Shown piece after piece: positions 8,843 to 61,504 of a stretch of DNA of 64,000 nucleotides; position 1 is the first letter of the stretch; every line of letters begins with the position of its first letter. Both the position numbers and the translations under genes were made by a program. A model generated the notes under the pieces. That model made no database searches. It was given only the letters and a program-made list of their open reading frames with translations, and was not told the DNA's origin. Source of the DNA: Sphaerodactylus townsendi. Lineage: Eukaryota. The stretch is from assembly GCF_021028975.2 (NCBI RefSeq), contig NC_059435.1:29636001-29700000 (forward strand), in the 5' to 3' direction.

Positions 8843-9140
8843 GGATCTTGGTCATCTAGAGATCAACTGTAATAACAGGAGATCTCCAGGGTGCTACCAG
8901 GAGGTTGGCAACCCTAAATACAGGGCTGCCAACTCTGGGTTGGGAAGTACATGGAGATTTGGAGGTTGGCGACTGAGGAGGGTGAGGTTTGGGGAGGACA
9001 GGGATTTCAATGGGATATAATGCCACATAATCCATCTTCTGAAGTGGCCATTTTCTCCTGGTGAACTGATCTATGTTGCCTGGGGATCAGTTGTAATAGT
9101 GGGCAATCTTCAGCTGCCACCAGGTGGTTGACAATCCTAC
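8843..9140. mobile_element. Abundant non-autonomous element with (A)GGGTTGCCA-type ends; related copies at ~10740-11030, ~12540-12650, ~27010-27135, ~27600-27690, ~30400-30635
   Basis: Recurrent motifs ggttggcaacccta, gatcagttgtaat and ttttctcc..g.gaactgatc shared among the copies. Confidence 0.6.
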
Positions 9141-9971
9141 TTACATACTGGTCTACCCATTTTACCACCATTATATGATCTGAAAAGCATGTTCCATATT
9201 TATAATGTCATGCCCTTAAAAACTGTCAAGAGGCCAGTCCTGCTAAAATGGCAGCTAAATGGTTTGATCTGAACTCTGAATTGTCACAGTCTTCCTTCCT
9301 AGGAAGAGGCAGACAGGCTCCCCAAGGAGGTTTCAGACAGTTGAGAAGTAATCGTGTGCTTGGGTTATATTGGCGTTAAGCCTGCGGTCTTTTTATTGTT
9401 CAGGATATAAATCTAATCCATACATTAATGTCTGAAACTTAACTGTTTTATTTAACAATAGCAAAATATCTGTACAATGGGAAAAGAGCCTTTAAAATGA
9501 AGGGTATTTGTCAAGTACAGCCCACCCTTATATGTTCTGCAGACAGAAATACTGCCAACCCCCACTGAGATCCAGAACAGGACCCCCTTTCTCATATCAC
9601 CCAGCCCAGGGGCAGAGCAAGGGGGAAGTGCACCCGAGGCATGCGTGCACCCTATGCTCCTGCCATGTCCCGTCCCCCTGGAACGCCCTTGCCACGTCCT
9701 CGCCACGCAGGAGTGCACGCCTGGGGCGTCGCACACACCCCCATCCCCTTGGCACTATGCCACTGACCCAGTCCTAAAGCAAATATCACATGAAAACCAA
9801 TATTTCCCTTCTCACATCACCTATCTCCAATGCAAATATCATATTGAAACTCAACTGGATGAAAAGTCTCCAGAATAATAACCAAGGCCCCTGGAATTCT
9901 CCCCCATCTCCCCACTGCTGCTCCAGCAACCCTTTAAACTGCTACAAGATTCTTGCCAGTGAGGGCAAAAT

Positions 9972-10500
9972 AGAAGAAGAGTTTGAATTTATACCCCACC
10001 TTTCTCTCCTGTAGGGAGGCTCAAGGTGGCCTACAAACTCATTTCCCTTCCTCTCCCCACAACAGACACCTTGTGAAGTAGGTGGAGCTGAGAGAGTTCT
10101 GAAGAACTACCCTGTTTCCCCGAATATAAGACATCCCCTAAAAATAAGACATAGTAGAGGTTTTGCTGAAGTGCGAAATATAAGGCATCCCCCAAAAGTA
10201 AGACATAGCAAAGTTTTTGTTTGGAAGCATGCCCGACGAACAGAACACAGAAAAATAAGACATCCCCTGAAAATAAGACATAGCGCATCTTTAGGAGCAA
10301 AAATTAATATAAGACACTGTCTTATATTCAGGGAAACACGGTAAGACTAGCCCAAGGTCACTCAGCAGGTATCATGTGGAAGAGAAGGGAAACAAATCGA
10401 GTTCACCAGGTAAGAGTCCACCACTCATGTGGAGGAGTGGGAAATCAAACTCAGTTCGCCAGATTAGAGTCCACTTGCTCTCTAAACCACTGCACCACGC
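9972..10500 (-). mobile_element. tRNA-derived CORE SINE (Squam3-like), interrupted by a Tc1/mariner MITE
   Basis: gactagcccaaggtcac core, gaagaaga tail and tRNA-like head (rc gcgtggtgcagtggtttagag); similar to 25211-25471 and 39017-39312. Confidence 0.75.
10110..10341. mobile_element. Tc1/mariner (Tc2/pogo-type) MITE with TA TSD, nested in a SINE
   Basis: TA|ccctgtttccccgaatataagac ... gtcttatattcagggaaacacgg|TA; internal repeats of ataagaca(t). Confidence 0.85.
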
Positions 10501-13500
10501 TATGCAGTTTGCCCTTACCACAAAATCCATCTTCCTTTCCTTAAACAAAATTATGGCACCCATTTACCTGTACAGTAAGAGGTACAAGCATGGATACTGT
10601 TGTGGAGGGAGAGTTATACCATTGATCAGTTTGGCCCAGTACTTTATATTTGGAGTGGCACAGCTCTCCAGCATTTCAGGCAGAGAAATGTACATGCTAC
10701 CTGGGGTCCTTTAACAAGTGACCCCATTGATCCCGGGGCTTCCTGCATGCAAAACATATTGCCTCCCATTTCCTCCAGGGGAATTTACCTATGCAATATG
10801 GAAATCAGTTGTAATTCCAGGAAAACTCTAAGCCCCATCTGGAGGTTAATTACAACTGCCCTCCATGCAACAGAGACCGATTCCCCTAGAGGAAATGGCA
10901 GCTTCAAAGGATGGTCTGTGTGGCATCACACCACCACTGAGTTCCCCCAATTTCCGAAATTCTGCCATCCCCAGCAAGGCCCCGCTCCAATTTCCAGGAA
11001 TTTCTTAAGCCATAGTTGCCAACACTAGCTACTGTAGAATAGGCCCAAGGCAGTTCCATGCACAACAATCTTCAGTAAATGGCATCAAACAGTGATGTAA
11101 CTTTTTTTTAAAGTAGGAAGGTACTAATACATTTTCCCAGACCAATTTCCACAGGAAAATAACTTCAACCGACTTTTCAGAAGCAACGTTGCCACACTGG
11201 AATTGCTACTTCTCCTTACTGCGACAGCAGTGTTTCAACCTCCATTCACCTGGTTCAGTAACACTTGCCTCTCCCAGAGTTCTGTTAATTTTTCCTACAT
11301 CACTGCAAGTTTCCCAGGTGCCGAGACTAGAAGCTTGGTGCAGCAGCTTTTCAGATTATATGATCATCCTCCGTGCTGGTTTCTTTTAAAAGCAGCTAAG
11401 CAAGTTTTCTTCAGCGGTATGTCATTAAGGACTGACACACCTAGGGCAAAAATCTCACATGTGTGAACAGCTATTTCTCCTATCCCATTGTAAAGACATG
11501 AAGCCAACTACCCTATAAAACCCTTTTCTTGTTCAGCTGCCAAATGCCAGATGTTCAAAACACAGGACCGACCATCAATGCCCAACATTAGAAGACATTT
11601 CACAACCACAGCCTATACTGGGAAGGATTCCAGGGGAAGGCTAGATAAGTGCCATATCATTTCCCTCCTGACATGACAAGGCAGCCCAACCTCTTCATAT
11701 CTCAGCATACCATGATAACAATGTACTACTTTGGCAATGCACTTTCCCCAACACAAAAGAGAAACCCAAACTTTCCTGTAATTCAGGCCTGCCGGGCCAA
11801 CTGCAAGAGGTTCTTTTTGCCTAGTGCATCTTTCGTCCAGCTAAAAAGACTTCTCATTTTGCTCCCTTGGAGAATTAGATTAGGGGAATTTGTGCCAAAG
11901 AAATGATTTCATTATTAGACAGAGTTGCTAGGGAGTTAATGGGATGACGTGGAAATTCTAGATGGCTAATAAGCTAAGCAGAATTTCTAATTGCAGGTAC
12001 AAGAAGGACGCTTGTGGAACTAGAATCTGTGCTAAAATAAAATGCAAAAAGAATGAAACACACAACTTATAATTAAACACTGGGATTGCAAATGCTGAAA
12101 CACGCCCCCAAAATTTAAAAGTCCCCAAATCTTTTATTGCCACAATAGTAGACTTAACTGATAAACATAACCATAGAAAGAAATCTGGTTGTTCCAGTCA
12201 TCGGCAAGCTGAACAAAAGAGCCAAGAGGTTGAATCCAGACTAAACTAGCAATTTTCCCCAATTCCTCTTTCCCTCTGCAGGGCCCCTCCCCCCCATGTT
12301 ACTCCTCAGGGTTCCCCTGGCCCCCAGAAGCCATATTTCATGGAGAACAGTGCATGGAAGGGGGAGCAGAGGGAAAGGGGAGGGTACAGACACTTGATGG
12401 AAATTTAAGTCTGCATCCAGCTCTATGAATAGGCAGTTCTTTAGTGCAGGGGTGCCCACCCTTTTTGATCCTGTGGGAACCTTGGAAATTCTGACCTAGG
12501 ATGGTGGGCACGACCACAGAATGATTGCTGTGGGAGGTAGTTCCCCCTTGGTCTGGCCCTGCCTTCCTGTCCCCAAATCCCACCATCCCCAGGGTTCACC
12601 CGTACCCCAAATCTCCAGGTATTTCTCAATATGGAGCTGGCAACCCTAGATGGGAAGATCAGGCTTCATACCATGAGCACATTCAGTTGCAAGAATGTGG
12701 AGTTGCCTTACTACTTTGGTCATATGAGCCATTTAGAAAACCTCTCTATTTTCCCTCAGGATGGATTTACATAATGATTTGACTGTCATCACGCAGCAGA
12801 CATCCTTGGGCATTGTGGTTTTGAAAACAATTCTGCATATTATAGCAGATTGTCCCTATGATGAATTTGAACCAACTGACCTGAAGCCTGGACTCACTCT
12901 GAACCCATCAAAAGGCAAGGACACCTGGATAATCACTGCAAAATTTAACCATCTGCAGCTAATGGTGGGAGAAATCACTTTGCAAGAAAAAAATGGTTAA
13001 GACTGGCCATGTTAACATTTCCTAGCTCCCTCTTCCCACATGTATGGCTTGCTTCCTGTGATCCTCTGCCCTTCTATATAGAATGGGACATTCTGCCCAT
13101 CATCAAGTTCCCAAGAGCAGATTACTGTGTGTTTTTGTATTCCCCACCCCCCACCGCCGTTTTACTAGGACAGTAGCTTATCTACCAGGACTGTGGGTAG
13201 TTTTGAGATTTAATCCAGTTCTCAACGTCAGTGGAATGCTGCCTCTTTTGCAAGAGGTATAAGTGCTCTACAACCAGAAGCCAGAGTGATAATTAATGCC
13301 TGGAATCCTGCCCTTCGTCAATGTGCTTTGTTCCTAAATGACAGCTTGGCTGCTTCTACTCAGGCCATCTGCCTGCTTGGCAAGCTGCCTCTTCTGCAAG
13401 GTGATCTAACTTTACCACGATCGATCACCATCCGGAGAGGAGCAAAGTGATTTCTTAAACCCCTCATTTGTCCTTCCTTTGGCATAAAGCATATCCATCC

Positions 13501-14654
13501 AGTCAAACTTTTGCTTTGTTCATGCCACTAGATTTGCTGCACAAGACCAACAAGATTAAACAGCTCCTACTGCCGTAAGATATATGTTATGATTAGGACC
13601 CCCATGAAACTGGCTGAGAACATCAATCTGTCATCAGGCGGGTTTTCAGACACTAGGCTAGAACAAGCTTTGAGCTCCTGCAATGGAAGGAAGGCAGGCA
13701 GGCAGAAGATTTTCAGCCCAATCCAAAGGGGAGGGGGTGGATCTGCCAGTGGGACCAGCACAGGACCATGCCAGTGGATTTCCCCTCCCTGTGGCACTTG
13801 CCTCAGTGGAAGGGCAAATCCTCTGGTGGGCAGTCACTGCAGCTCTCCCTGGCAGTGAGATGGGACACCGGATGCTGCACCAATGTTCCTGCACTGCCAC
13901 TATTGACGTAGCAGGGCAATCCCGGGGTGTGGCCAGGGGAGGAGCCAACATTAGACAGTTTCCTCCCAGACATTGACCTGATTGCACCAGCAGCCAGACT
14001 TATGTCACTGAAAGGTGACAATGGAGGCTTATCACTGATGGGAGGGGGGATTTTTTATATTTTAAGAGAAGGCATAATCCCAGTTTATAGTACATTTTCA
14101 TTCCTTGCTAAAAAAAAAAGTTACCTCCCCAACTATGGTGTCTTCCTTCTCTTTTGATAATTGACTATCTCAAGATTGCTAATTGACTATCTCAAGATTG
14201 CTCAGACACACACTCACATACCATGGAAAAGAACTAAGAAACACATTATCCTTTAACTTCCTTTGTTTAGCTCCACAAGTCATGAACATATTATCCACGA
14301 TTTAATATTTCCACAGAAAACTTACATTCTTTTATTTCACTACAGTATTACAACCTTTGGAATGTTTGATTCTTCCTTTTCTCCAATTATCCCTTGGCTG
14401 ATAAACATGGTTTTATTGCACTGATTTTGTAACAAAAGGCCAGTGAAAATGCAAAGACCTCTTTAAAAAGACTGAAAAGCATGATAGTTAAATGAATGCA
14501 ACCATGACGGGAAAAGATCACATCTTTCTCTGTTAGTTAGAAACCAAAGGCACCATTTCCCATCAATACATTTTATACATTTTGCTTTATACATTTTGCT
14601 TATCATAAATGGTGACTTGCATATCAGTATTTTTATGTCATTAGGGCTTACTTA

Positions 14655-15045
14655 AGCCCCGTGGCATCAAGGGATAAGCTGCAGGACTGCAGTCAAAGCT
14701 GTGCTCATAACCTGAGTTCAGTTTTGATGGAAGCCTGTTTCAGGTCAGTGGCTCAAGGTTGACTCAGACTTTCATCCTTCCAAGGTTGCTAAAATGAGTA
14801 ACCAGCTTGCTGGAAGTAAAGTGGAGAGGACTGGGAAAAGCAATGGAAAACTGCCCCGTAAACATAGTCCAGTGGTGGCGAACCTCTGGCACTCCATATG
14901 TTATGGACTACAATTCCCATCAGCCCCAGCCAATTTGCCATACTGGCAGGGGATGATGGGAATTGTAGTCCATAACATCTGGAGTGCCACGGACATAGTC
15001 TGTCTAATACTGGTAAATGTTGTGAAGTATCACTCCATGGATTAG
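14655..15045 (+). mobile_element. Sauria SINE, interrupted by a hAT MITE
   Basis: Diagnostic ggctcaaggttgactcag..ttcatccttcc..ggt..taaaatgagta body and BovB-like ctgggaaaagcaatggaaaactgcccc segment. Confidence 0.75.
14870..14992. mobile_element. Palindromic hAT MITE with 8-bp TSD ACATAGTC
   Basis: TSD at 14862-14869 and 14993-15000; internal palindrome gactacaattcccatca / tgatgggaattgtagtc; right TIR shortened. Confidence 0.8.
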
Positions 15046-16766
15046 GGGTTATTTAATTCTTTTTACTGCCTATTTAGTCTGAAATTGCCAAGACCTTTTC
15101 CATCAAAATGCAGTTCCACAAATTGTGGTTCTATGACACGAGTACATATTTAGAACAAGTTAGTAGGAAAAAACCTGGTGTCTCTCATTAGCCATATTGC
15201 AAACCAAACTGTGTTACTTCTGTTGTCTTGAGGTTTTCTGCTAGATTTTCACAAGAGAAATTTCTATCGTATTATCTAAATTAAAATCTTGCCTTACTTA
15301 AATGATACTCTTGGGCTATGATCTTTAAATCCCATCATATTGTAACTTCACCCTAGCTCTTGGTTTCATGGACTGATAGCTTCCTACTTGCTTAATGAAA
15401 ATGCAAATTAATGTTTTTGGCAATTATATAGCAAGCTCTTTCAAGAACGTTATAGGATTTCATACTTCCCAATGTGATGTCCCACTGGAAAGCACTCCAA
15501 ATACTCATATTGCTTATTTTAGGTCACAGCACCACTGGCAGAAAACACAGACTTCATTTCCAGGCCATGGTCTGAATGTGAACAACCCTTAATTCTGGAC
15601 TTTTGATCTAACGGCCAGAGTAGCCATGAAGCATTTATATCTTATTTGTATCTCTATTCTCCTACAGGATTTTTTAAGTATGCAAAAATGAAAGGTAACA
15701 TGTTCACACTAAAAGCTCCATTCAGCATCACAAGTACTCTGCACATTTAAGTTGGTTGCCTTGAATGCAATTTGCATATCCAACATCTACCAGGTGGGTT
15801 ACTGTGCTATACTTATTCGACAACATTCCTGTTCAGAAAGTGGGCCCATTAAATGTGAAAAGCTTACTGAATTATTAGAATTATTGCTCCTGGAATGTAG
15901 GTATCATGCAAACTGACATCTAGCAAATAGCTCCTGCACACGTATCTTGATTATGAGCTTGTCGCAATCTTTGCTATCATCGTTTTAAACTTATTTGCAT
16001 CTCAAGGAGAGTTACAAGCATAATGTTCTGTAAAGGAAGGACTAGAACTCTCAAGATGCTAGTAAGACCATCCAGGAATTGGCATTTTAAAGGACAAATT
16101 GACTTTCTTTGAATGAATGTTGCTTCAGTTGCATTCACTCTGCCCATAAAACAGACTTGTGGCATGTTAAAGATTATATAATACATTTTATTACAGCAGA
16201 AGGCCAAAAATTCCAGAGTTTATATGTAGGTTTGATACTATTAGACTGTCAAGGCCTACTTGGCAGAGTACAGAAGTGAACAGAATAGGATCGCTATGGA
16301 AAATCATTGCCCTTCTTTACAACAACCTCCCTTTTATTTTTTGCAGATTTTGCAGATCCTGGCTGCAACTTACAAAAGTTTACACCATAATCATTTGGTC
16401 TTTAAGACCCTCTGAAATCTTCTCACAAGGCACCCAGTTCTTAAACTCATAGCTTAAGGCACGTTTAATTACAATGAGTGTGTCCCAGCTCCACGCTCAT
16501 GATGACTTCCAGTACATGAGACAGTACCAAAGCCATAATGTAAAACAAACATAAGACTACAATCTGCTCCCACTATCAGAGTCTCTAAGGTGATTTTGCC
16601 TTGACTTTGCTATTCTTTGACCGCTCCGCAAAGCAGGAAAAGCTCTGGTTTAATGCTCTAAAGTCCCCCACTTGCTCATTCTGACCTCTGTGTATGCAGA
16701 GGTTCTTTCGAGACTACATCATACATGAACCAAAAGCAGGAGGCTTCCCTTCCTACCACCACTAAC

Positions 16767-25077: not shown

Positions 25078-25210
25078 NNNNNNNNNNNNNNNNNNNNNNN
25101 NNNNNNNNNNNNNNNNNNNNNNNNNNNNNNNNNNNNNNNNNNNNNNNNNNNNNNNNNNNNNNNNNNNNNNNNNNNNNNNNNNNNNNNNNNNNNNNNNNNN
25201 NNNNNNNNNN
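25078..25210. other. Assembly gap (133 N)
   Basis: Run of N abutting a SINE tail. Confidence 0.99.
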
Positions 25211-41269: not shown

Positions 41270-42228
41270 CCATCTGGTTCCTTCCAGAAAGAAGTGGCTA
41301 GTCTGTTGCAGCAGGGTTCTGTCCTAGGCCCGGTGCTATTCCATGTTTTTACCAATGACTTGGGTGATGGAATAGAGGGCATGCTGATCACATTACGCCA
41401 AATTAGGAGGGGTAGCAATTATCCCAGAGGACAGGGTCAGAATTCAAAATGGCCTGAACAGATTTGAGAGTTGTGCAAAACCTAACAGAATGAATGTCAA
41501 CAGGAAGAAAAGGAGGGTACTACATTTAGGCAAAAAAAAAATGAAATACACAGATATAGGATGGGTGACCCCTGGTTTGACAACAGTTCATGTGAAAAGG
41601 ATCTGGGAGTCTTAGAAGACCACAAGCTGAACATGAGTTAATATTGTGATGTGGCAGCTAAAAAACCCAATGTGAACGTGGGTCACAGCGTTTGGCTCAT
41701 GAGAAGTCATAGTACCACTCTATTCTGCATTGGTCAGACCTCATCTGGCACGATATATTCAATTCTGAGCACAATAATTCCAGAAGAATATTGACAAGCT
41801 GTAGTGTGTTCGGACAAGTGCAAACAAGATGGGAAAAGGTCTGGAACCCATGCCTTATGAGGGAACTGGGTCTGTTTAGTCTGCAGAAGAAAAGGTGGTG
41901 ACATGAAAACCAGGTTGAAATATTTGAAGGGATGTCAGGTAGAAGATAGAACAAGCTCGTTTTCTGCAACTCCAGAGACTGAGACACAGATTAGTGGATT
42001 CAAATGGTGAGAAAAGAGATCCCATGTAAATATTTGGAGGGACTTCTTGAGGCAGTTCAGCAGTGGAAAACTCTGACTCAGACTGTGGTGGACTCTTCTT
42101 CTTTGGAGGTTTTTCACAAGAAACTGGATGGCCATCTGCCAGGAGTGCTCTGATAGTGTATCTGTGCATGGCAGTGGGTTGGACATGAGGGTAGCTGTGG
42201 TCTCTTCCAACTCTGATGATTCTATGAT
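41270..42228 (+). mobile_element. CR1 LINE 3' fragment
   Basis: QGSVLGPVLFHVFTNDLGDGIEGMLI RT motif; 3' end ccaactctgatgattctatgat. Confidence 0.85.
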
Positions 42229-42970
42229 CTCAAAGTCCAAGACAACCAATGGGGTTGTAGCCAGGTCAGTGTTTGTGGAGGGAATGAAAGAAAAACGGCA
42301 AAGTTCTCATCTTTTTGCTAACCTTTCAAGGAAATACAGCCCTTCAAATCCTCCCCAAAGCAACACAGAGACAAAATCAAGATCCAGTTTCACTAGGGAC
42401 AAGTAGCAAAAAACGGGCAATGTTGCCAATGAAAAGGGATAGCCGAAGTTCAAGGAAGCAGCCATTCCTGAGTTCCTGGAGACCCAATTATGGGGGGCTA
42501 GAGCCACTTGGCAGGGCTGAAATCCCAAGCACAAGCATGAACCCATAGGCAGTGGGGCCACTGGTCCCCCCAAGGCCATCATTGATTGGCAGCGCCTCTC
42601 TGGGGCCCATGTCGAGATCTCATAAGTCTGCCTCCCAAGCCTTGTTGTCTATGCTCTGCTCCACTCCCAACCCACAGCCCCCGGCCTTTGAGTGAGCTGG
42701 GTGAGGACTAGAAACAGCGCTTCTTCAGGGGTGGCAGCCCCCCTCCCCCCATGATGCTCAGCTGCCTTTCTTTGCACGCCTTCAGGGCCAGGCCAAAAGG
42801 CCTCTTTTCCCCCAGGCTTGGAGGAAGGGTTGAATCGTCTGCTCTGTTGGGGGCCTCTGATCCTGCTGAAGTCAAATGGCTTGTGCTTTGTGCTGTGGGC
42901 TTGGGCGGACTAAAGAAAGGTCTCACTCAACAACTCAGGATCTGTGTTGGGTGGAGATCTGGCCGCCTCA

Positions 42971-44515
42971 CCCCCTCCCACCCCCCAATCGCTAGATCCC
43001 TCCTGCCCCTAAAGCCCCTCCCCCTAGGGAAAAAGGAAAAGCCAGGCAGGTGGAGCCGGGTTGCTAAGCAATGGGACACGCCCTCCTTGGTAACATCACC
43101 CCCTGCTGGTTCTCTAGACCCCGGGTCGGTTGGTTTTCACTGTGCGTTTGTGATTGGCGAAGGAGCAGGAGGTGTTTGTCGTTAGTTGTTGATTGTTTAG
43201 TGAAGGAGGAGTTGTTTTGTTGGTTTGTTGGTTTCTAGGAATTCTGTTTGTTTGTTTGCATTTTATTAGTTTCTTTGTTGCTTGTATTTTATTAGCACAG
43301 TTAGTTTCTTCTTCATTTGTTTGTTTGTTTGTTGTTTGAATTTATTAGCGTAGTTTTTTCCTTAGTGTTTTTGAATTTTAGTGTATATTTAGTGTACATA
43401 GTGTATATTTTGTAAATACGTTTTCAGTTTAAAATTTGTTAGTGAGTTAGGTAATTAGTGAGTTAGGTAGTTAGAAAAAAAAATGCTCTCATGAAACACC
43501 TGAAAAAGTAAGTACCTAGGAAGCTGCCCCAAAGACGAGCGAGACCCCTGAGGGAATGGGGTCTGCTGGAAACTAGCAGGCCACTGTGAAGGGGGGGGGA
43601 GCTTCCTGCTGCTGTCCCTGCCTTCGGGTGTGGGGGAAACGATCCCTTTCATGCAGGCAGAGAGCCGAGCATGCTTAGAGGGACCCCACAGCCCCCTCCC
43701 GCCCCCCATTGCTAGATCCCTCCTGCCCCCAAATCCCACCCCCCATGGCTGAGGGGGGGAGGAAAAGCCAGGCAGGTGGAGCCCGGTTGCTAAGCGACGG
43801 TGCACACCCTCCTTGGTGGCATCACCCCCTGCTGGTTCTCTGGACCCCGGGTCGGTTGGTGAGCTCTGTGGGTTTGTGAGTGGCGGAGGAGCAGGAGGTG
43901 TTTGTTGGTTGTTATTGGTTGTTCATTGTTTAGTGCAGGAGGAGGAGTTGTTTTGTTGTTTTGTGTGAATTTTGTTTGTTTGCATTTTATTAGTTTCTTC
44001 TTGGTTTGTTTGTATTTTATTAGCGTAGTCAGTTTCTTCTTGGTTTGTTTGTTTGCATTTTATTAGTTTCTTCTTCGTTCGTTTGTTGTTTGAATTTATT
44101 AGCGTAGTTTTTTCCTTAGCGTTTTTGAATTTTAGTGAATATTTAGTGTACATAGTTAGTGTATATTTTGTAAATACGTTTTCAGTTTAAAATTTGTTAG
44201 TGGTAGGTAGTTAGTGAGTGAGTGAGTGAGTGAGTGAGTGAGTGAGTGAGTGAGTGAGTGAGTGAGTGAGTGAGTGAGTTAGGTAGTTAGAAAGAAAAAT
44301 GCTCGGGAAACATCTGAAAATGTAAGTACCTAGAAAGCTGCCCGAAAGGCGAGTGAAACCCTTGAGGGAATGGGGTCTGCTGGAAACTAGCAGGCCACTG
44401 TGAAGATGGGGGGGGGGGAGCTTCCTGCTGCTGTCCCTGCCTTCGGGTGTGTGGGAAACGATGCCTTTCATGCAGGCAGAGAGCCAGCATGCTTGGAGGG
44501 ACCCCACAGCCCCCA
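42971..44515 (+). promoter_or_regulatory. Tandemly duplicated promoter/first-exon module of the MROH-like gene (copies ~42971-43691 and ~43692-44515)
   Basis: Both copies share gctagatccctcctgcccc, an RFX-like box (43060-43072; 43786-43798), a long TG-rich tract, an ATG..ctgaaaa mini-exon with GTAAGT donor, and the same downstream intron start. Confidence 0.85.
44213..44279. repeat. (GAGT)n microsatellite just upstream of the MROH-like start codon
   Basis: Direct read; expanded in copy 2 only. Confidence 0.95.
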
Positions 44516-47500
44516 AACCACAGGTTCCAGCGAAATCCCCATTAGATGCCCACTGGAAACCATCCACAGGGCAGCCGAGCTGTGTCCATGAGACAGGGCT
44601 GGAGAGCGGGAGCAAGAGGAGACCACGGGGCCCACTCCTTACCTTCTCTGTGCTCTCTTCCAGGCTCCAACGCCTTCGGGCCAGATTTTCAAGAGGGAAG
44701 GTTGCCCCTCTGGCCCCGACAGACAGCGGACGGGAGGATGCAGGTGAGGACACATTCCAGGCACATGTGGCATTGCTGGTAGGGCGGGGAGGTGGAAGCG
44801 ACGAACCGGCTTGTGGAGCACAACCATCCCCAACCATCCCCGTCAGGGTCCTCTGGGGTGAGAGGGGCTGAAATCAGCCACAGCCACGAGCTGACCCAAG
44901 ACCCCAGGGAGAAGCCAGGCCTACCGTGCCTAAAGCTGCCAACAGCGACAGGTCCAATGGGCCCGACAGGGAGCTATTCCCTCAGCCAACCTCTGGGTGG
45001 AGATCACCCCTCAGGGCCTCTCAAGCACTGGCTGGAAACCCATCACCAGTCCGAGAGCCTGGCTGACAGGGCTCGGGGGGAGGAAGGAGTCCCTAAGCCA
45101 ACCCTGTGTCCTCCCTGTGTTCTCTCTGCAGCTGTCGCCCCGCCAGCACTGGTTGTGGCCGGCTACCTGAGTGGCAAGAAGGTAAACCTCCCATGGCAAA
45201 GGGGACAAGGGCCGTTCCCAGTGATTCAGCAGGCCCCAGGCGACGCAGAGGGACTCCTCAGAGGGGCTCCACTCCCTTCCTCTGGGCTGGCGTGTTTGCT
45301 TCCAGAGGGCTGCTGTCTGTCCAGGACACCCTGTGCTCTGAGCATCTATCAAGGCTCTCCCCAAAGGCTGGCAGGGCACACTGGGCCATCAGCCCCCAGG
45401 CAATCCCGACTGAGCCGGGCAGCCTTCCAGAGAACGAATTCGTTTCCAGCGATGCTGACAACTTCTCCGTTGTGGTGGAAACGCAGCTCCTACCCCCTGC
45501 CATGCAGCAGGGACCTGGGGGCTCCCCTCGCCCTGCTAACGACACCCCTCTTTCTCCTTGCAGGGGCCCAACCAGGAGCTGGCCTTCCTCCAGGCAGTGA
45601 GGGGTGTTTGCGAGGCCTGCAAGGGGAGGGGCCTCCGCACACTCCCCTTCAGCAAGCAGGCCATCGGGGAGGAGATCCTGGTGAGCGAGACCGAGGGCAG
45701 CGGGAAGGGCCGGGAGGAAGATCCCGTGAGGGCCCTGGGGGAAAGGCTTCCTTGCCTTCAGCCTCCAGTCGGAGGCTGTTTTACAGGGTTGTGTTGGTGG
45801 CTGGCAGACGCTTCACCAAGTGGGCCTTTCCCGATTGCCTTGGCGGAAGTCTGGGTCAAGGCACCTGAGCCGCCTGGAGCCTTTCTGCTCCAAGGACTTG
45901 TGCTCAGTCTGGCATTGCACGAGGGAGGGAGGGAGGGAGGGAGGGAGGGAGGGAGGGAATGTGGGGGCAGGAAAAGGCTGATGGAGCCCTGACCCTCTGC
46001 TTTGCCCCTTGCTCACTCCCAGGAAATCATGGAGGAGGACTTCTTCGACCTCTCGGAGACCTTTGTGGAGGCCATGGCAACCGTGAAAAAGTTGAGGTAC
46101 GTCTTTTTCAGAGAGCACCGTTGTCCACAGCAGTTGGACAGGAAGGAGCTGGGTGAGGCCTGAATGAAAGGCAGAGGAGGCCTCAGTGGGTGTGAGGACG
46201 GGTGAGGCGAGAGCCGCTACAAGGAAAAGAAGAGAGATCCCCCCTGAAAAGGGAAAGAGAGGTGGCTGGCCCGAGGGGGGCTCTCCACAGTCTGGAGGGG
46301 AGAATGAAAGGAGGACCCCCCGAACATTTAAGACAGAGATTTGCACACAGATAGCTGCACACAGACATGGAGGCTGGAGCTAGTAACCCTCCCCCAGGCC
46401 TCCACGCAGTGTGAGTTTGTACATCCTGGGGCCCAGCGGGGAGAAGGGAGGCGCCAGGAGGACCAGAGCATCAAAGGTTTGGGGATGACTTTCCCTCCCT
46501 TATGGCGTGGAATCTGATAACTGTCCTTCCCTCCTGACAGCCAGTTCCAGCCTCCACTGGGCACTGCTTTAAGAAGCTCCATCCTGGCCTGGGCTGTCCG
46601 GCTCATAGCGAGCGGGAGCCCAGGCCCAAACCAGCCCCACCATCTGGTAAGTTCAATGCCGACTGATCTCCTTGTCAAGGCGTGGCACAGTGGCCTGCCG
46701 GTCTTGGGGGCCTGGGGCCAGGTCTTTCCTGGAGTGCTGAGGAGCAGCTCAGGCAAGGCAGGAAAGGCCACTGGGACAGTATCGCTCTTTGGGTCCAGAA
46801 GGCTCGGGCCTGCTTGCAGCAGGAGGGGAACAGGCTGGTCTTCCAGGAGGGCGGTGGATTCAGCACACCCACACCAGCTCCATCTTCCTTTCAGGAGCTC
46901 CAGGAAAGGGCCGAGAAGGGCCTCCGGGAAATGCTGGAGCAGCTGCTGAGGGAGGACCAGTCTGCAGGGCACGTGGTGGGCCTCCTGGAAGTAAGTGTGG
47001 AGAAGACTAGGAGGGGGTGAAGGGAGGTCCCCGCTGAGGCTGCAGGGGCAAGCGGGAGGTGGCAGCTCCTCGGGGTCAGCAGAAACTGTACTGCACTCCC
47101 ACTGGGGCCCCATCTCGGCTGCTGGTTCAGGAATTCCTCCATGCTGGGTGCCTGATGGCCAGCATCCAATCAGGTTTCTTCATTTCAGTGGAATCCCCCT
47201 CCCAACCACTGCCAGCCCTCCTGGGGACAGCAATGCGCTCTGGTGTGGGATTTGGAGAACGTCCCTGGATTGAGGACTATCCGCACACGCAGTCCCCCAC
47301 CTGCAGCGTGAAGCGGTCCAGTCCAAGCTGCACTTTGCAGAGGGTTGAAATGGGCCCCCGGATTCCGGCTGGTGGAGAGTCCTCTGACCCTTTCCTCTCA
47401 GGGAGACCTCCTGCCGGAAAGAGCCAGCACCCCCCATCCGCCTGCTTGAGAACACAAAGTCAGGATGGCTGCAGGCAGCAACCCCACAGGGGCAGAGCCC

Positions 47501-49660
47501 CTGCTGAATAACACGCTGCTTGCTTCCACAGCACCTGGCCTACTGGCTACAGAGCAGCTGTCCTGCCACCCGATCCAGGGCTCCTCCCTCAGCAGCTGCC
47601 TCCTGCATTTTGCCGGCCGCCTGCCCTCCTTCAAGGTGAGTCCTCCACCCGCCTCTCCAAGGGCCACGGAGCAAAGCAAGAGAAGGGGGGGGGATCCCAA
47701 GCTCCTTTGCTTCAACTTGGGGAGGGGGAGCTGAGGACTGGGCCATCAGGCTTTCCCAACCAACCGTGGGGCATCCTCCCCTCTCTGCTAAGAGGAATAC
47801 TGTGGCAGGGGGCCGGGGTAAGATGGGGAAGGGGGCTGAAGCAAGCGGAGGGTGCTGGACTGGCTGGTGAGCAATGGAGGTCTTCTTTCTCCCTCACTGG
47901 GGGTGGGTTCAGCTGGGGAATTTCATGGGCCCCCGCTCCAGCCTCTCTTTGCCTCCGCCCCCATCTCCCACCCTGTGGATTCCTTGTCTCCAGCTGCCCC
48001 TTGTGCAAGTGGGTCTCCCGGGGTCTCCTGCCCACCTCTCAGGCGAGCCAGTGTCCCTTGGGGGCCAGAGCGTCTCCCACCTATGCCTTCCGGTTCTTTC
48101 CTCTCCCCACGCTGTGGACAGGCGGGACCAGGAGGCAGAAAGCTAACTGGTCAGAGCTGCTCTTCTCCCCGTGGATCAGCGAGCCGTTCCTTCTCTCCTT
48201 CTCTGTCTAGATCCAGGACAGCGCTGCCCTGGGGAACCTGCTGGTGCAGCTGGCTGTCTCCCTGGTCGACCCAAACACTGGGATCCGGGCACAGGTCAGG
48301 GAGACCCTGGGCCAGCTGCACAGGCTGCTGCAGTGCCAGCGGGGTAAATTACCAGGGCAGGATGAGGCCCGCTGTCTTTGCCGGAAGCCGGTCCCCACCT
48401 TTATGACCTCACTGGAACTGGGTCACGTCTTCTGGTCCCACTTCTTGCTGGAGGTCTCCTCCCTTCACATCGTCACAGTTCTTCATGGTGCTCTTCCCAC
48501 TGGTCCCCACAGCCCCATCACATATGCCCACTGAAAGGGCCAGTGAACACAGTGGAATACTCGGCTGGGCTCCCCTCACTGCCATGGCGAGGCGGGAGGT
48601 CTGGATTGGGCTGAGAGGCCCTCGTCTCAAGGGCAGTTCCCTGCTGAGGCGAGAGAGAGACCCCGAGCCAAGCAGCCAGAAAGAAGGCCGGCTGTTGTGT
48701 GTGAGGCAACCCAGGTCACCCCTCCTCTCTTCTCAGGGCTCCGCAAGAAGACCAGGGGCCCCCGCTGGGAAGAAAACCCAGGGCAGCCCTGGAAGGAGGG
48801 CTACTTGCACCTCCGCCATGTGGGTGAGGTAAGCGGGATCTCTGGTGGTGCTGGAAGGCACTCTCGTGAAAGGGAAGGGCCAAGAGGGGCCTCTGGATTC
48901 CCCCCCCCCCGGGCCAGGAAGGCCAAAGAGATAGATTGCCTTCTCCCTTGGCCTTAGCGAGGGCGCCCTCAAGGGCCATCCCTGGACTCTGGTCTGAATT
49001 CCGTGTCCCCTCAAAGTGCCTGGCCCTGCCTGGAAGAGAAGAGGGGTGTCCCTGCCTCAGGGAGTTTCAGGCCTCCATTTGGAAAGGGCGGGAGGCAGGC
49101 CAAAGAAGCCAGGCAGGAGCCCACCTGTCCGGGGAGGGAGGGAGGCCAGGGCAATTCCACCTCCACGGCTTCTACTGGGGCAGGGCAGGAGAGGACTCAA
49201 AGGCTGACTTCTTGATTGCAGGTGTTCCTGGGACACCTCACCCAGAAGCAGAAGGAAGCCTTCGCCCAGGCAGCATGGGGCAATGTGTCCCACCTGGCCC
49301 AGGACTGGGTGAGGGAGGGAAGCCTCGTCCTCCTGTACTCCGTCCTGGGCCAGGCCCACCATCTGCTGGAGGAGGAGGAGGTGAGCGGCTGGGGGAAGGA
49401 AACAGTGGTGCGGGGTGGGGGGTGGAGGAGATAGAGGGCAACATCCCAGCCGTGTGCTGGCAGAAAAAGGAGCCCTGGGATCACTGGGGGCTTTCTCCCC
49501 TCTTCTCCAGGAAGATGACTTCCAGATGAGCCTCTCTGCCCTCCTCTACAAGCTTTGGAAGGGCAGGGAGGCTCCTAGTGAGATCCAGGCGCTCCTGCCG
49601 AAGACTGGTAAGGCCACAGTTTCCACGGAAACGCGGGTGGGGAAAGAGGCAGGTCCTTAG
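44299..49660 (+). CDS. Maestro HEAT-like repeat (MROH-like) gene, 12 coding exons, ~394 aa if one 1-nt deletion is corrected; possibly a pseudogene
   Basis: Exons 44299-44321, 44664-44743, 45132-45181, 45564-45680, 46023-46096, 46541-46646, 46895-46990, 47532-47635 (frameshift), 48211-48343, 48737-48828, 49222-49380, 49511-49660. All introns are GT-AG and phases match except at exon 8. The helical peptides (ELAFLQAVRGVCEA..FSKQAIGEEIL; LREMLEQLLRED..LLEHLAYWLQS; LGNLLVQLAVSLVDPNTGIRAQVRETLGQLHRLL; VLLYSVLGQAHHLL) resemble sauropsid MROH-like proteins as recalled. Confidence 0.8.
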
Positions 49661-49699
49661 AGCCACCAAAGGAGCCAAAGGTGAAGCTCCACAACGACA

Positions 49700-50215
49700 C
49701 CTTTGAAAATGATGCTGTTTGGGGCAGATTCCAGCATTACTTGTTTAAACTAGGGAGCCCAGATTCTCCTTTTAAATCCACCTTAAAGCGAGAATCTGGG
49801 GTCCCTAGTTTAAATAATATTGAAAGTGATGCTGTTTTCCCCAATTGGGGGGATTGGATACAACACCATAAAATGTTTTCATAGCAGTAATAAAACATTT
49901 TGAAAGCATTTTGAAAATGTTTTCAAAAAAATTATTTCTGCTGTGTGGTATGGTCTATTGCTGTGTTCAGATTTGTGAGTTGGGGCATGTTCTAAAATGT
50001 GATGGTGACTTTGAAACGACCTGGTGTAAAAAATCATTATTTGGGTGGGAGAGGGCGGCTGTCCATGGGGGGGCACCAAACTCCAGTTTGCCCAGATATG
50101 CCACTGGGCGTAGCTACAAGGGGATCAGGGGGTGCGTGTTGCACTGGGCACACGCCTGGGGGGCATCAAACTCAGGTTTTGCCCAGGGCTCCAGTTTGAC
50201 TAGTTATGCCATTGA
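49700..50215. mobile_element. DNA-transposon-derived (hAT-like) fragment
   Basis: Ends in ttttgcccagggctccagtttgactagttatgccattg with an internal gatatgccactg; abrupt drop in GC after the MROH-like gene. Confidence 0.45.
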
Positions 50216-51904: not shown

Positions 51905-53562
51905 AACTCTCGAATCTTTCGTTTCTGGGGAAGGTAATTGAGAGAGTGGTGTTGGAGCAGCTTCAGGGTTTCCTGGATGACGCATCGGCGTTCGATCCCT
52001 TCCAGTCTGGCTTCCGTGCTGGGCATGGGACGGAGACTGTCACAAATCGCCGGGCCCGTCACAGATAATGCTTCGCGGAGTGCAGCTTTGACCGAGGCGG
52101 GATCGGGCGCTTCGTTGGTATTGTTAGATCTGACCGCGAGCGCTTTGGATATGGTCAACCACGATCTTTTGGCCCACCGCCTGGCCGCTTCCGGAGTCGC
52201 GCGGGCACTGTCCTTCAATGGATTGCCTTCCTCGGTTCCTCCGGATCCGGAGTCAGCAAGTGTGGTGGTGGGGACCAAGCCTCGGGCGGTGCCCACTTCA
52301 TTGTGGGGTGCCCTCAGGGAGCGCTATTGTCCCCGCTGTTATTTAATATCTACATGCGACCCCTTGCTCAGCTGAGTACGGAGCTTTGGGCTGGCTCTGT
52401 CATCAGTACGCTGACGACACTCAGCTCATCTCTGTTGATGGAGGGGGGGGCGGTCATACGCCTGCAGCCTCCAGCACTGTTTGGAGGCACGATTGCTGCT
52501 GGTTGGTTGCAACAGAGCAGGTTAAAACTCAATCCATCGTAAGAGCGGAGATCCCTCTGGCTTGGTGCCGTGGGGGGGAGGGGAATTTCCAGCCGCCGGT
52601 GTGGGAGGGGGCCTTATTGGCTGCCTGCCCCCTCAGTCCAAGCAGCCTGGGGAGTCCCACCTGGATTACGTCTCTTTCAATGGAGACCCAGGTGGCCCAT
52701 ATAACCGGGTTTAGATTTTCCATCTTCGACAGGCCCGCCCGGCTGGCTCCCTTCCTCTCCCACGCAGAACCTCTGGCCACGGTGATCCATGCAACGGTCA
52801 CCTCCAGGTTGGACTGTTGTAGACTCGCTTCAAACTACGCGGGCCTACCCTTGAGGTTGATCCGAAAGTTACCAACTGGTCCAGAATGCAGCGGCCCGCT
52901 TGCTCACACGGGAGGCGCTTTCGCCGCGACCCTCACATATTCACCAATACTGTGTCGCTTGCAATGGCTCCCGGCAGTTGAATTCGGGATTGTCTTCTGG
53001 CGTATGGGTGCTTTACCTTTAAGGCCTTTACGCTGCCTGGGACCCCTCATACCTCCAGGACCGACATTACCCCATATGTCCCTACTTCAGGCCTCTACTA
53101 CGCAGTAGAGGCCAATTTGCTGGTAGTCCCTGGTCTCTTCAATGATGCGGTTGGAGCTTCCACTCGGGCCAGGACTTTTACAGCCCTGGCTCCCTCGCCT
53201 GGTGGGAACACTCTTTCCTCCAGCTGTCCGGGTCTCCAAGGGACCTTGGTGAGTTCCGCAGGGCTCTGCAAGACGGAGTTGTTCCAATCGGCCTTTGAGT
53301 GTCCAGCCGCTGACTGTGTGCCCCCTTCACCCTCCCCATGTTTGGGCCTATTACTATCTATGTGACCCATGCTTTTCTCCCCTCCTGGGAGGGTCTAATA
53401 GGAATTGCGGGCATTGTTTATTGTTTATTATTTGCTGCATTTTAAATCTAATTTAAATTATTTACAGTCTATATGTATCTGAAATTTTATGTTGTTAACC
53501 GCCCAGAGCCCTTCGGGGATTGGGCGGTATATAAGACTGATAAATAAATAAAAATAAATAAA
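51905..53562 (+). mobile_element. L2-clade LINE, 5'-truncated; RT and C-terminus with many frameshifts
   Basis: LSNLSFLGKVIERVV..DPFQSGFRAGHGTET, PQGALLSPLLFNIYMRPL, CHQYADDTQL, VIHATVTSRLDCC; 3' end gggcggtatataag..(taaa)n. Confidence 0.9.
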
Positions 53563-56051: not shown

Positions 56052-56861
<810 letters not shown>

Positions 56862-56937
56862 TGAGCTTGAATCAGTTGAAAATTGTGGTTTCAGACAACA
56901 TAGTGTTGGCTACTAAGTAGTGGTTGTTATGGGTGAA

Positions 56938-57140: not shown

Positions 57141-57975
57141 TTAATTGTTCCTTTTCCTGAGGTCAGTGTTCATATTTCCTTTGCTTATGGTAAGATAACA
57201 TTTTATTTGTATGCCACCCTTCCCCTTGGTAGGTTCAGGGCAGTTTCCAGTGGTTTAAAATACAGTATCAATGTAAACAACCACATATCAAGTTCTACAG
57301 ATGGCAGTTAAAATCCTCAAATTCCTAACTAGTCCAACTTCCAATCGATGGAATAGGTGTGGAAATACAAAAACAGTAAAATAAAGAAGGGGAAGGAGGG
57401 AGGCCAGACATGATGGTAAAAACGTTGCTCCTTCAGCAAGGATCTGCATTCCTCTTGAGCTCAAAATTTTGTTACTTGGCAGTGACCATCTCTGGGAACT
57501 GTTTCAAGCTTTTTGCATGCATTTCCTCCTATGGCTTACTGTTCTTAAGGTTTTATTTCTTTTGAAATATTCAAGGTTTATATGTCATATTCTGAACTTC
57601 AGACTCAAGCCTTTGTCAGTTTTCTGATCTTTCCTTTACCTGCTTTGGAGTGCTGGATTCTGGTTCTTCATTGCAACCATTAGCTGAGTTGCTGAGGTCT
57701 CAAACCTAGACTATGGGGGCTGGAGAATAATAGAATGCTACTTGCAGCTCAATCCACAGGGAGAATTGCCCAGTGAGACGGCACCGCCATACCACCTGCT
57801 GTGGGGTTTCAGATAGCACAGGGAGCATGGAAAACTAAAAAGCTCCCTGGCCAACCTGAAAACCCCAATTGTCACTCAGTAGGCTACGCCAAACTAAGAC
57901 GTGGCATAAGCTGGTGGGCAAAAGAAAAGCGGCGTCTTATTCATGATTTTAAAGTACTTGTTTGGTATTTTCTAG

Positions 57976-58109
57976 GTTGTGTCATAGCTGAGCTCTTTAC
58001 TGAAGGGGTACCTCTGTTTGACTTATCGCAACTTCTGGCATATAGGAATGGTCTCTTTGCCCCTGAACAAGTGTTAAATAAAATTGAAGACCGGAGTATC
58101 AGAGAACTG
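57976..58109 (+). CDS. PIK3R4: PIK3R4 exon 3
   Basis: [31 protein letters not shown]; AG/GT boundaries; phase consistent. Confidence 0.97.
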
Positions 58110-58167
58110 GTAAATAATGTTCTCATTATGCTGGCTTATTAAATTTCTGTTCCACCTTAGTAAATAA

Positions 58168-58815
<648 letters not shown>

Positions 58816-59634
58816 TAAAGAGGGTGAGATGAATTATTGCTTGATTTGTCTTCCCGTAGCTAGAAAGCCCATAGTAGATGATTCCATGACTGCTCTTGTG
58901 GGGGATCCTCATGTTCATGCATTCTATCTTCTATTTACATACAGCTCAATACTGAAAATCCCCGTTTTGTGGCAAACTACAATTTAGTATTCCATCTAAT
59001 CCACCAATAGTAATGATCTGTGTTCCCTCCAGTATTTTGGTTTGGACAGAGTAAACAATAGTTTTCTGTTATTCCTAACTGGAACTAGTCCAGCTAGTTC
59101 AATTCTTGGAACTAGTCCTGTTTAAAAAAACAACTTGAATATGGGAAATGAACCACATAAAAAGGAAATAGATGATGCAACATCACAGCCTAGTGAAAAT
59201 TATGTTAGTGAAGCTCTTCCCGTTTATTTTTTGTTCTTTTGTATACTTAATCGAACTTCATGGGAGATAAGCATGGAAAGGGTGGGGCCATTTGTGGTCT
59301 GAACATTACACCAAACTATAGTTTGTTGGGAAACTGGAAACCTTTACCTAGTACTTTGAGCAAAAGGGACTGCAGTCCCCAGAATCCTCCAGTCTTGTTT
59401 ATGTCATGGCGAACCATGGCTCTGAGACTTTCCTTTTTAACCAAGTGTGTCATTTTATATTTTATTCTGTTCCTCGTGTAAAGTTCCAGGTGTAAATAGA
59501 AATGTGCCTTATGATGTTGCCTGTATTGCATGACAGACTGTTTACAGCATGCATGCAGAGTGCTTGCCTCACCAGCAACGAAATCTTTAAAGTTAATTTT
59601 CCAAGCAACTTAACATTACTTTTAATCACTGTAG

Positions 59635-60130: not shown

Positions 60131-60484
<354 letters not shown>

Positions 60485-61504
60485 TAAATGAACATTTTTT
60501 GATTGGGTGAATGAGTGGTTTGAAGTTGTTTTTTGCTAATACCGTGTCTTTGAGGCACACAGAACTGAGCTACTCCCCAAAACCTAATCACAGCAGCTAA
60601 CGGAACAATAACTTGATCGATAATCATAAATATGCAAGAAGTGCCCTCTTAGTTCTGATCAGTAGCCCATCTAGCTCAGTACTCTGTCTCCAACCGTGGC
60701 CAACAAGATGCTCCAGAAGCCTACTAGTAATGCATGGGGGATCTAGCCATCTGTAGTTGTTTGTCCTTGGTGTTTATTGATCAGAGGTTACAAGAAAGGT
60801 TTTGTTTTAATAGCAATGAATAGCCTTCCCTCCATGGATAAGTAGCAGTCTTTAAAGTCTTATGTGCTTTTGGGCATCACATCATTTTGTGGGAATGTGA
60901 TGGGCAGTCCATATGCTGATTGTGATATATTCATGCCCTCCTGTCCTTATCAGGCTGCCAGGCAAGATCATTTCCCCAGACTCTGCTGTCTGTGTCTGAT
61001 CACAGGTGGGGTTTCTCAGTGGTTGGAACCTCCTGTCTGGAATGCCATCCCCTTTGAGACCTGCCTTCTTGTCCTTCAGGCCCAAGGCTAGAACAGTTTT
61101 TTAAACCCAACTTGAATTAAAAGTGTTCCATCTTTTCTACCTTTTTAATGGTCTGCTTCTAGCCCGGTCACTGCCTCTTGAACCTGATTTTAAGATGCTG
61201 AATGTTGTTTCATGCTGTTTTATGGCTTGTTTTTATGCTGTGGTTATATGATTTTCATTGTGTTGCCTTATTTGTGAGGTGCCCCGAGCAGATGTCAGGA
61301 GAGGCAGCATGTATATATTTGAAATAAGTAAATAAGCTAAACTTGTGAAAGCAGGTGGTAGAATTCTGCTTGTTCTCAAATGAAGCCTACTTACTAGACG
61401 TTTTTCAGAAGACCATCAGTAGACTATCTGTGCTCTTAACATCTTTTTTGAGTTGGCCAAGCTTTTAGAGATGGTAATAAGAACATGTTCTGCCTGATTT
61501 TCAG

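Follow-up and report, generated by a model that had tools for sequence, protein, structure and literature searches.

The 64,000 nucleotides (nt) of Sphaerodactylus townsendi DNA that we analysed (contig NC_059435.1, positions 29,636,001 to 29,700,000; hereafter the window) hold, in twelve + strand exons between 44299 and 49607, a copy of a gecko family of short genes for Maestro-type HEAT proteins. That the locus is a true copy of this family we regard as practically certain. We further consider it probable that this is a decaying copy of a family dispersed through the genome by duplication of DNA. An earlier note, made from the letters of the window alone, had described a hidden and intact gene here; our result is mainly a correction of that description, as the locus is a damaged paralogue of an annotated, uncharacterised family, for which the public gene model is mis-built.

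Exon chain and kinship of the window copy

The first exon carries a GT donor, and each of exons 2 to 12 is bordered by an AG acceptor and a GT donor; the borders were set by alignment to relatives, and some of them lie 1-2 nt off a simple reading of the + strand. Exon 1 (44299-44321) opens with a start codon (MLGKHLK..), ends in a phase 2 donor and lies at the same position as the start of the RefSeq models P0022 and P0035 (MLRKHQKM). Exon 2 (44664-44743) was located by tblastn with residues 9-34 of the S. townsendi protein P0001, and its AG..GT borders are conserved in three copies. It is followed by exon 3 (45132-45181) and by exons 4 (45564-45680), 5 (46023-46096), 6 (46541-46646) and 7 (46895-46990), the last four being placed by tblastn and border conservation. 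Exon 8 (47532-47635) is 104 nt long and has its frame shifted by a 1-nt deletion after 47580, while exon 9 (48211-48343) encodes the core HEAT motif (..LAVSLVDP..). Exons 10 (48737-48828) and 11 (49222-49380) were again placed by tblastn and border conservation, and exon 12 (49511-49607) is the last one present in the window copy. Reading on from it into the intron (49608-49660), as the earlier note did for its C-terminus, adds 17 codons after 49607 and ends at a TAG (49658-49660).

Every exon was recovered in order by tblastn of P0001, P0035 and P0037. The 12 AG..GT pairs and the exon lengths are kept in two paralogous S. townsendi loci, L001 and L003 (the latter LOC125435561), the exceptions being exon 8 of the window copy and exons 9 and 12 of L003, and loci L002 and L004-L006 of Gekko kuhli and Paroedura show the same exon order. 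The window copy shares 12 of 13 exons, with their phases and splice sites, with the gecko family typified by LOC125443989. The twelve short GT-AG exons of the earlier note are thereby borne out, and the peptides that it quoted are present in the window. Its statement that the phases match throughout fails at exon 8, where 104 nt stand against 105 nt in the paralogues and the two halves of the exon lie in different frames.

Since two paralogous loci have these splice sites and exon lengths too, the exon chain is not a by-product of GC-rich, stop-poor DNA. The GC-rich block does contain long open frames, in various reading frames and on either strand (44792-45868 on the + strand and 46328-47113 on the - strand are examples), which would speak for a chance product of such DNA. 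We give this explanation next to no credence, however, because the homology to annotated proteins extends exon by exon over three gecko genera with the splice sites conserved, because a Pfam domain is matched, and because the ratio of non-synonymous to synonymous divergence (dN/dS) is below 1.

Two annotated S. townsendi genes, LOC125443989 (XP_048372383.1, 381 amino acids (aa); P0022/P0001) and LOC125435561 (P0035), have the same 12 exons, phases and splice sites as the window copy, with an amino acid identity of 75-91% per exon and a nucleotide identity of 88-89% that includes the introns and 2.3 kb of upstream sequence. The window copy differs from both in having one base fewer in exon 8, in being without exon 13 and the poly(A) signal, in a 5′ tandem duplication and an intron-5 segment of its own, and in its location in another chromosome region, beside PIK3R4.

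Nor is the gene hidden. A word search with P0001 recovered UniRef A0ACB8FUL2 (A0ACB8FUL2_9SAUR, here P0036), an S. townsendi protein of 366 aa. It matches window exons 3-6 and 9-12 with 100% identity and thus represents a submitter's gene model, present in GenBank/UniProt, for the locus itself. The model shares the intron read-through C-terminus of the window copy, but it starts within intron 2, runs exon 4 on into its intron and leaves out exons 1, 2, 7 and 8, the omission of exon 8 avoiding the frameshift. The public model is therefore mis-built.

The expected similarity to Maestro/MROH-type HEAT proteins was found, most clearly in intact relatives. We searched the window exons singly and ran the whole-protein tests on the database proteins P0001 and P0036; the Pfam family in question, HEAT_Maestro (PF21047), has a curated cutoff of 27.4 bits. 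Intact paralogues pass this cutoff, with 36.4 bits for P0001, 44.7 for P0037, 44.9 for P0018 and 45.2 for P0015. Exon 9 is the only single window exon with a Pfam match, a weak one (16.4 bits, E 0.0088, below the cutoff), and the public model of the locus, which is without exon 8, scores 20.4 bits (E 5e-4), also below it. At the C-terminus of P0035 there is, in addition, a weak HEAT_Maestro_2 match (E 0.077).

An exhaustive phmmer search with the 44-aa exon 9 against 1.84 billion representatives returned 21 proteins with E values of at most 0.001. The close matches are all short gecko proteins of 50-93% identity, among them P0001 (381 aa, 86% identity over all 44 residues), P0003, P0005 and the Gekko kuhli proteins P0015 and P0018; the cluster of P0001 contains XP_048372383.1, listed as 'uncharacterized protein LOC125443989' of S. 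townsendi. The other matches (E < 1e-3) are 30-46% identical. Nine of them, long non-gecko proteins (P0002, P0004, P0006, P0009, P0012, P0014, P0016, P0017 and P0021), were scanned with Pfam and rejected as MROH kin, as their content is generic or NACHT-linked HEAT and one is unrelated.

The AlphaFold check suggested by the earlier note gave a HEAT-like fold for the closest intact paralogue. P0001, modelled with AlphaFold2 from a family alignment of 17 sequences (predicted local distance difference test, pLDDT, 80.9; predicted template-modelling score, pTM, 0.77), is predicted to be an all-alpha HEAT/ARM solenoid of about 17 helices and no strands that follows a disordered basic N-terminus. 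Foldseek comparison of the model with the PDB returned ARM/HEAT solenoids only, at low TM-scores (0.2-0.3), and the nearest Atlas cluster is a chordate Maestro HEAT cluster.

The gecko family thus has the HEAT_Maestro domain and the all-helical HEAT solenoid in common with the vertebrate Maestro/MROH family (MRO, MROH1, 2A, 2B and 5-9), and a gecko relative, Paroedura picta P0045 (283 aa), bears the automatic NCBI name 'MROH7'. Canonical MROH proteins range in length from about 700 to 1,700 aa and also contain HEAT_Maestro_2 and MROH2B-type regions. The gecko proteins, in contrast, have about 380 aa and cover only positions 3-156 of the 229 in the profile. They also differ in being multi-copy and found only in geckos by the searches run, and no non-gecko MROH protein came up at E < 1e-3 in the exon-9 phmmer search. 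By its domain, the gecko family would belong to the Maestro/MROH superfamily.

A DNA-level duplicate and its edges

Window positions 41949-49697 align continuously with L001 positions 8122-15284, and from 42278 onwards with L003. Counted over gap-free columns, the introns are as similar as the exons: identity is 0.892 in exons and 0.884 in introns between the window and L001, 0.883 and 0.889 between the window and L003, and 0.940 and 0.954 between L001 and L003. The copying also took in 2.3 kb of sequence upstream and a 3′ fragment of a CR1 element embedded in the unit. Because introns, upstream sequence and CR1 fragment were all copied, we are dealing with DNA-level duplicates and not with retrocopies; no poly(A) tract is present at the unit ends. 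The proposal of a DNA-mediated, not retroposed, origin was therefore sound, and we have little doubt that the window copy arose by DNA-level duplication.

On the left, homology to the paralogues is limited by the CR1 3′ fragment (41949-42278, + strand), which is 95% identical to L001 over its first 79 nt; L003 keeps the first ~70 nt and then has a 264-nt deletion. By eye, a CR1 3′ end can be followed on the + strand over 41700-42232, with the C-terminus of open reading frame 2 (ORF2) and the 3′ untranslated region, and the paralogous units have its last ~330 bp as well. The continuation of the CR1 5′ of the shared part was seen, again by eye, only in the window, while L001 and L003 have in common another 400 bp upstream of the CR1 fragment that the window is without. 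Either a break of the window copy within a longer CR1 or its recombination with a resident CR1 may account for this.

On the right, homology stops at 49697 and the copy is short of the final ~310 bp of the unit, exon 13 and its AATAAA included; transposon-like sequence follows: a palindrome (49741-49817) that resembles a miniature inverted-repeat transposable element, with 35-nt arms that are 89% complementary, and then a transposon fragment (49842-50210). Hence, of the two sharp edges claimed for the block, only the right one stands, since on the left homology crosses the supposed border at the CR1 tail (42228) and reaches 41949. Positions 7725-8122 of L001 on the left and 15284-15593 on the right are absent anywhere in the window. 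The transposon family found at the right end of the window copy also adjoins the left end of the L001 unit (7449-7722); the element is common, so this is probably a coincidence.

These edges bear on the mechanism of copying, where an alternative would be that the unit was mobilised by a transposable element, through Helitron-like or other DNA-transposon capture or CR1-assisted transduction, and not by ordinary segmental duplication. Such an origin concerns the mechanism only and would be compatible with a decaying copy of a dispersed family. It would agree with the occurrence of the copies singly on several chromosomes and not in tandem, with the CR1 fragment at the left limit, with the transposon family just mentioned and with the fact that homology between L001 and L003 stops only a few nt from the poly(A) signal. 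We nevertheless find it improbable, for neither terminal inverted repeats nor Helitron termini, target-site duplications or poly(A) tails were seen at the unit ends, L001 and L003 included, and the end points of the window copy differ from those of L001 and L003. Moreover, the flanking transposon is absent beside L003 and common elsewhere, and the introns are kept.

Damage to the window copy

The window copy has neither an uninterrupted frame nor a terminal exon with stop codon and poly(A) signal, and the intact product of about 394 aa proposed earlier cannot be upheld. Exon 8 has 105 nt in L001 and L003, and the first 17 and the last 18 codons of the window exon match the paralogues in two different frames. 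If splicing were normal, the shifted frame would run to a TGA at 49310-49312, in exon 11. The 3′ end of the earlier model is likewise incomplete: in intact paralogues exon 12 is spliced to a 14-nt exon 13 whose stop codon overlaps an AATAAA (L001 15587-15600), and homology in the window ends ~310 bp short of this mini-exon.

The 5′ region is altered too. The upstream region copied with the gene (42279-44298, + strand) holds a tandem duplication peculiar to the window, in which a stretch of ~0.8 kb that includes exon 1 occurs twice (42971-43696 and 43692-44514, 76% alike); it is single in L001 and L003. The first tandem copy contains a dead equivalent of exon 1, with an ATG at 43483 and a stop after three codons. 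The same upstream region contains an (AGTG)18 microsatellite (44209-44279), 20 nt upstream of the ATG of exon 1. In intron 5, a segment peculiar to the window copy (46168-46530, + strand) aligns poorly to L001 and L003.

Base composition has drifted as well. The window has A or T where both paralogues have G or C at 361 sites, and the opposite holds at 139. We also mapped contigs of four public read runs from three organisms, whose library kind is not on record, onto 5.1 kb of the locus; these contigs cover introns and exons alike, so the runs read as DNA. Their differences from the window are biased in the same direction: A>G occurs 112 times and T>C 101 times, against 46 for G>A and 47 for C>T. 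Joints within the contigs were considered as splice junctions and rejected, as they are small indels between paralogues. Contig loose ends lie at both limits of the intron-5 segment, and the contigs also seem to be cut at a (GAGG)9 run in intron 4 (45921-45958).

We propose that a GC-rich gene unit of ~7.9 kb has been copied as DNA to many sites in the S. townsendi genome together with its promoter region, introns and CR1 fragment. Intact units comprise 13 exons and encode a protein of ~381 aa, predicted to consist of a basic disordered N-terminus, an alpha-solenoid of ~17 helices with a Maestro-type HEAT domain, and a conserved acidic C-terminal stretch. This protein may serve as a protein-binding HEAT scaffold. 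The family is old within geckos and has been under moderate purifying selection, while the window copy would have decayed by the exon-8 deletion, the loss of terminal exon and poly(A) signal at the transposon junction, the 5′ duplication and a bias from GC to AT. Both the scaffold role and the loss of function of the window copy are what we infer from these features; that the copy is non-functional and decaying seems to us rather likely.

A number of observations weigh against this interpretation. Exon 8 has phase 0/0, so skipping it preserves the frame, and many Gekko kuhli members without exon 8 still pass HEAT_Maestro (45 bits); the frameshift is therefore not necessarily fatal to the gene. 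Stops are absent from the other window exons, and the splice sites are all intact. The loss of the single base could stem from an error of assembly, as nanopore and linked reads were used for the S. townsendi assembly (10.1101/2021.08.13.456260), and the read contigs cannot single out the window locus at the 47580 site. As to the family, its confinement to geckos rests on word searches, which cover proteins of 210-667 aa, and on one exhaustive search with a 44-aa exon, and its copy number was estimated from summed contig depth, a quantity not equivalent to a copy number.

The first of these observations could mean that the window copy still works, as an exon-8-less protein of ~360 aa made from exons 1-7, exons 9-12 and the read-through tail, with polyadenylation at a downstream AATAAA such as the one at 49889 in the transposon. 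Besides the open remaining exons, the dN/dS of 0.28 against L001 would accord with a functional gene. We think a working copy unlikely, however, since exon 8 retains its splice sites and nothing compels its skipping, since the conserved mini-exon at the C-terminus is missing, and since the drift towards AT and a 5′ region that is duplicated and partly dead suggest that constraint has been relaxed; dN/dS between copies, for its part, mostly records the history before any inactivation. If, on the other hand, the frameshift were an assembly error, the gene would be intact save for its altered 3′ end. What is at stake is one C in a CC dinucleotide, and most family contigs have the extra C behind 47580. 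Yet the C is also lacking in some contigs of runs X1 and X4, Illumina data were used in the assembly too (10.1101/2021.08.13.456260), and the other signs of decay in the window copy are independent of this base, so that we hold an assembly error to be improbable.

Range, selection and surroundings of the family

The relatives that we found are all gecko proteins, from S. townsendi, Gekko kuhli and Paroedura picta, with 22 matches by word search and 29 by profile search; about 16 distinct S. townsendi proteins are among them. Within the reach of these searches, the lineage restriction put forward in the earlier note agrees with our data (29 of 29 relatives), and the divergence pattern argues for an origin of the window insertion within the sphaerodactylids.

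The family is also dispersed, as had been supposed, over at least five chromosomes including that of the window. Four other S. townsendi loci were fetched, each with a single family copy: at 1.7 Mb of the 40 Mb record CM037628.2, at 131.1 Mb of 133.8 Mb in CM037619.2, at 5.3 Mb of 114.9 Mb in CM037621.2 and at 144.7 Mb of 158.9 Mb in CM037617.2. Three of these four (L001, L003, L007 and L008) lie within ~5 Mb of the end of the chromosome record (1.7, 2.7 and 5.3 Mb), and the fourth ~14 Mb from it. PIK3R4 was not found beside other family members in the 10-kb flanks of the fetched loci. In Gekko kuhli, large sets of members occur on single chromosomes, CM122949.1 (83 Mb) and a 62-Mb record, with locus tags K2H54_049024-050394 on one record and K2H54_007832-011447 on the other; one cluster at 90% identity has 12 members, and many members are without exon 8.

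On the 5.1 kb used for mapping, 528-690 different contigs aligned at 85-100% identity. The summed contig depth, 100-2900 per bin (2-17 in the one bin peculiar to the window copy, 46310-46480), suggests tens of copies in the genome, perhaps around a hundred, with the warning, given by the mapping tool itself, that summed depth is not a copy number.

By the Nei-Gojobori method, summed over per-exon codon columns, dN/dS is 0.28 for the window copy against L001, 0.35 against L003 and 0.475 between L001 and L003, below 1 in all three pairs of this comparison, which the earlier note had called for. Sphaerodactylus and Gekko proteins are 45-58% identical and have the same exon structure, while their introns can no longer be aligned; Paroedura shares the exon structure and the 45-58% protein identity. 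As protein identity and exon structure have been kept while the introns became unalignable, the family has long been protein-coding under moderate constraint; as far as sequence can tell, it was, or is, protein-coding. It is a mix of intact and damaged copies, given the intact paralogues and the defects of L003 in exons 9 and 12.

The synonymous divergence of 0.27 exceeds the intron divergence of ~0.12, an excess in keeping with third codon positions rich in GC and CpG. In the three genera, each of the copies examined forms an island with a GC content of 0.61-0.66 between flanks of 0.45-0.53, and the ratio of observed to expected CpG is 0.28-0.39; such low values mean that the GC-rich islands are not CpG islands. 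A plausible cause of the islands would be GC-biased conversion or repair among copies. The window itself has a GC content of 0.57-0.65 within 44.5-49.5 kb against ~0.42 in the flanks, and the block was rightly described as richer in GC than its surroundings.

What emerges is a family of short Maestro-HEAT genes in three genera, many copies of which were duplicated with their introns and form GC-rich islands in AT-richer surroundings. In squamates, the family could be used as a marker system in studies of how genes disperse at the DNA level and of GC-biased evolution, and some caution is in order with GC-rich 'hidden genes' in the S. townsendi genome, which may be members of it. A bolder and rather doubtful idea is that the ~7.9-kb unit is a self-contained gene that spreads at the DNA level in geckos, seeding single copies on many chromosomes (several of them a few Mb from a chromosome end), kept GC-rich by recombination or gene conversion between copies, and selected as a lineage-specific, possibly germline-expressed family of HEAT adaptors. 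If this were true, we would be looking at an unrecognised ampliconic gene family of squamates and not at ordinary segmental duplicates. A literature search on MROH expansions in reptiles and on MROH7 in geckos returned no paper that mentions the family, and it is not mentioned in the S. townsendi genome preprint (10.1101/2021.08.13.456260).

PIK3R4/VPS15 lies downstream of the window copy on the same strand, with 6.4 kb between the end of the copy and the first coding exon of the gene. The protein begins at 56073 (MGNQLAGI..), and its coding exons in the window (56073-56864, 57801-58142, 58234-58818 and 60143-60487, + strand) match Pfam Pkinase and VPS15-like helical domains. Elsewhere in the window, a run of 133 N (25078-25210) marks an assembly gap or masked sequence. 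Between the family copy and PIK3R4 lies a decayed element resembling a long interspersed nuclear element (51923-53335), in which a Pfam scan gave no match at E 0.1; reverse-transcriptase motifs can be recognised in it by eye (..NHDLL.. and ..YADDTQL..), and it is 68% similar to L001 25369-23969.

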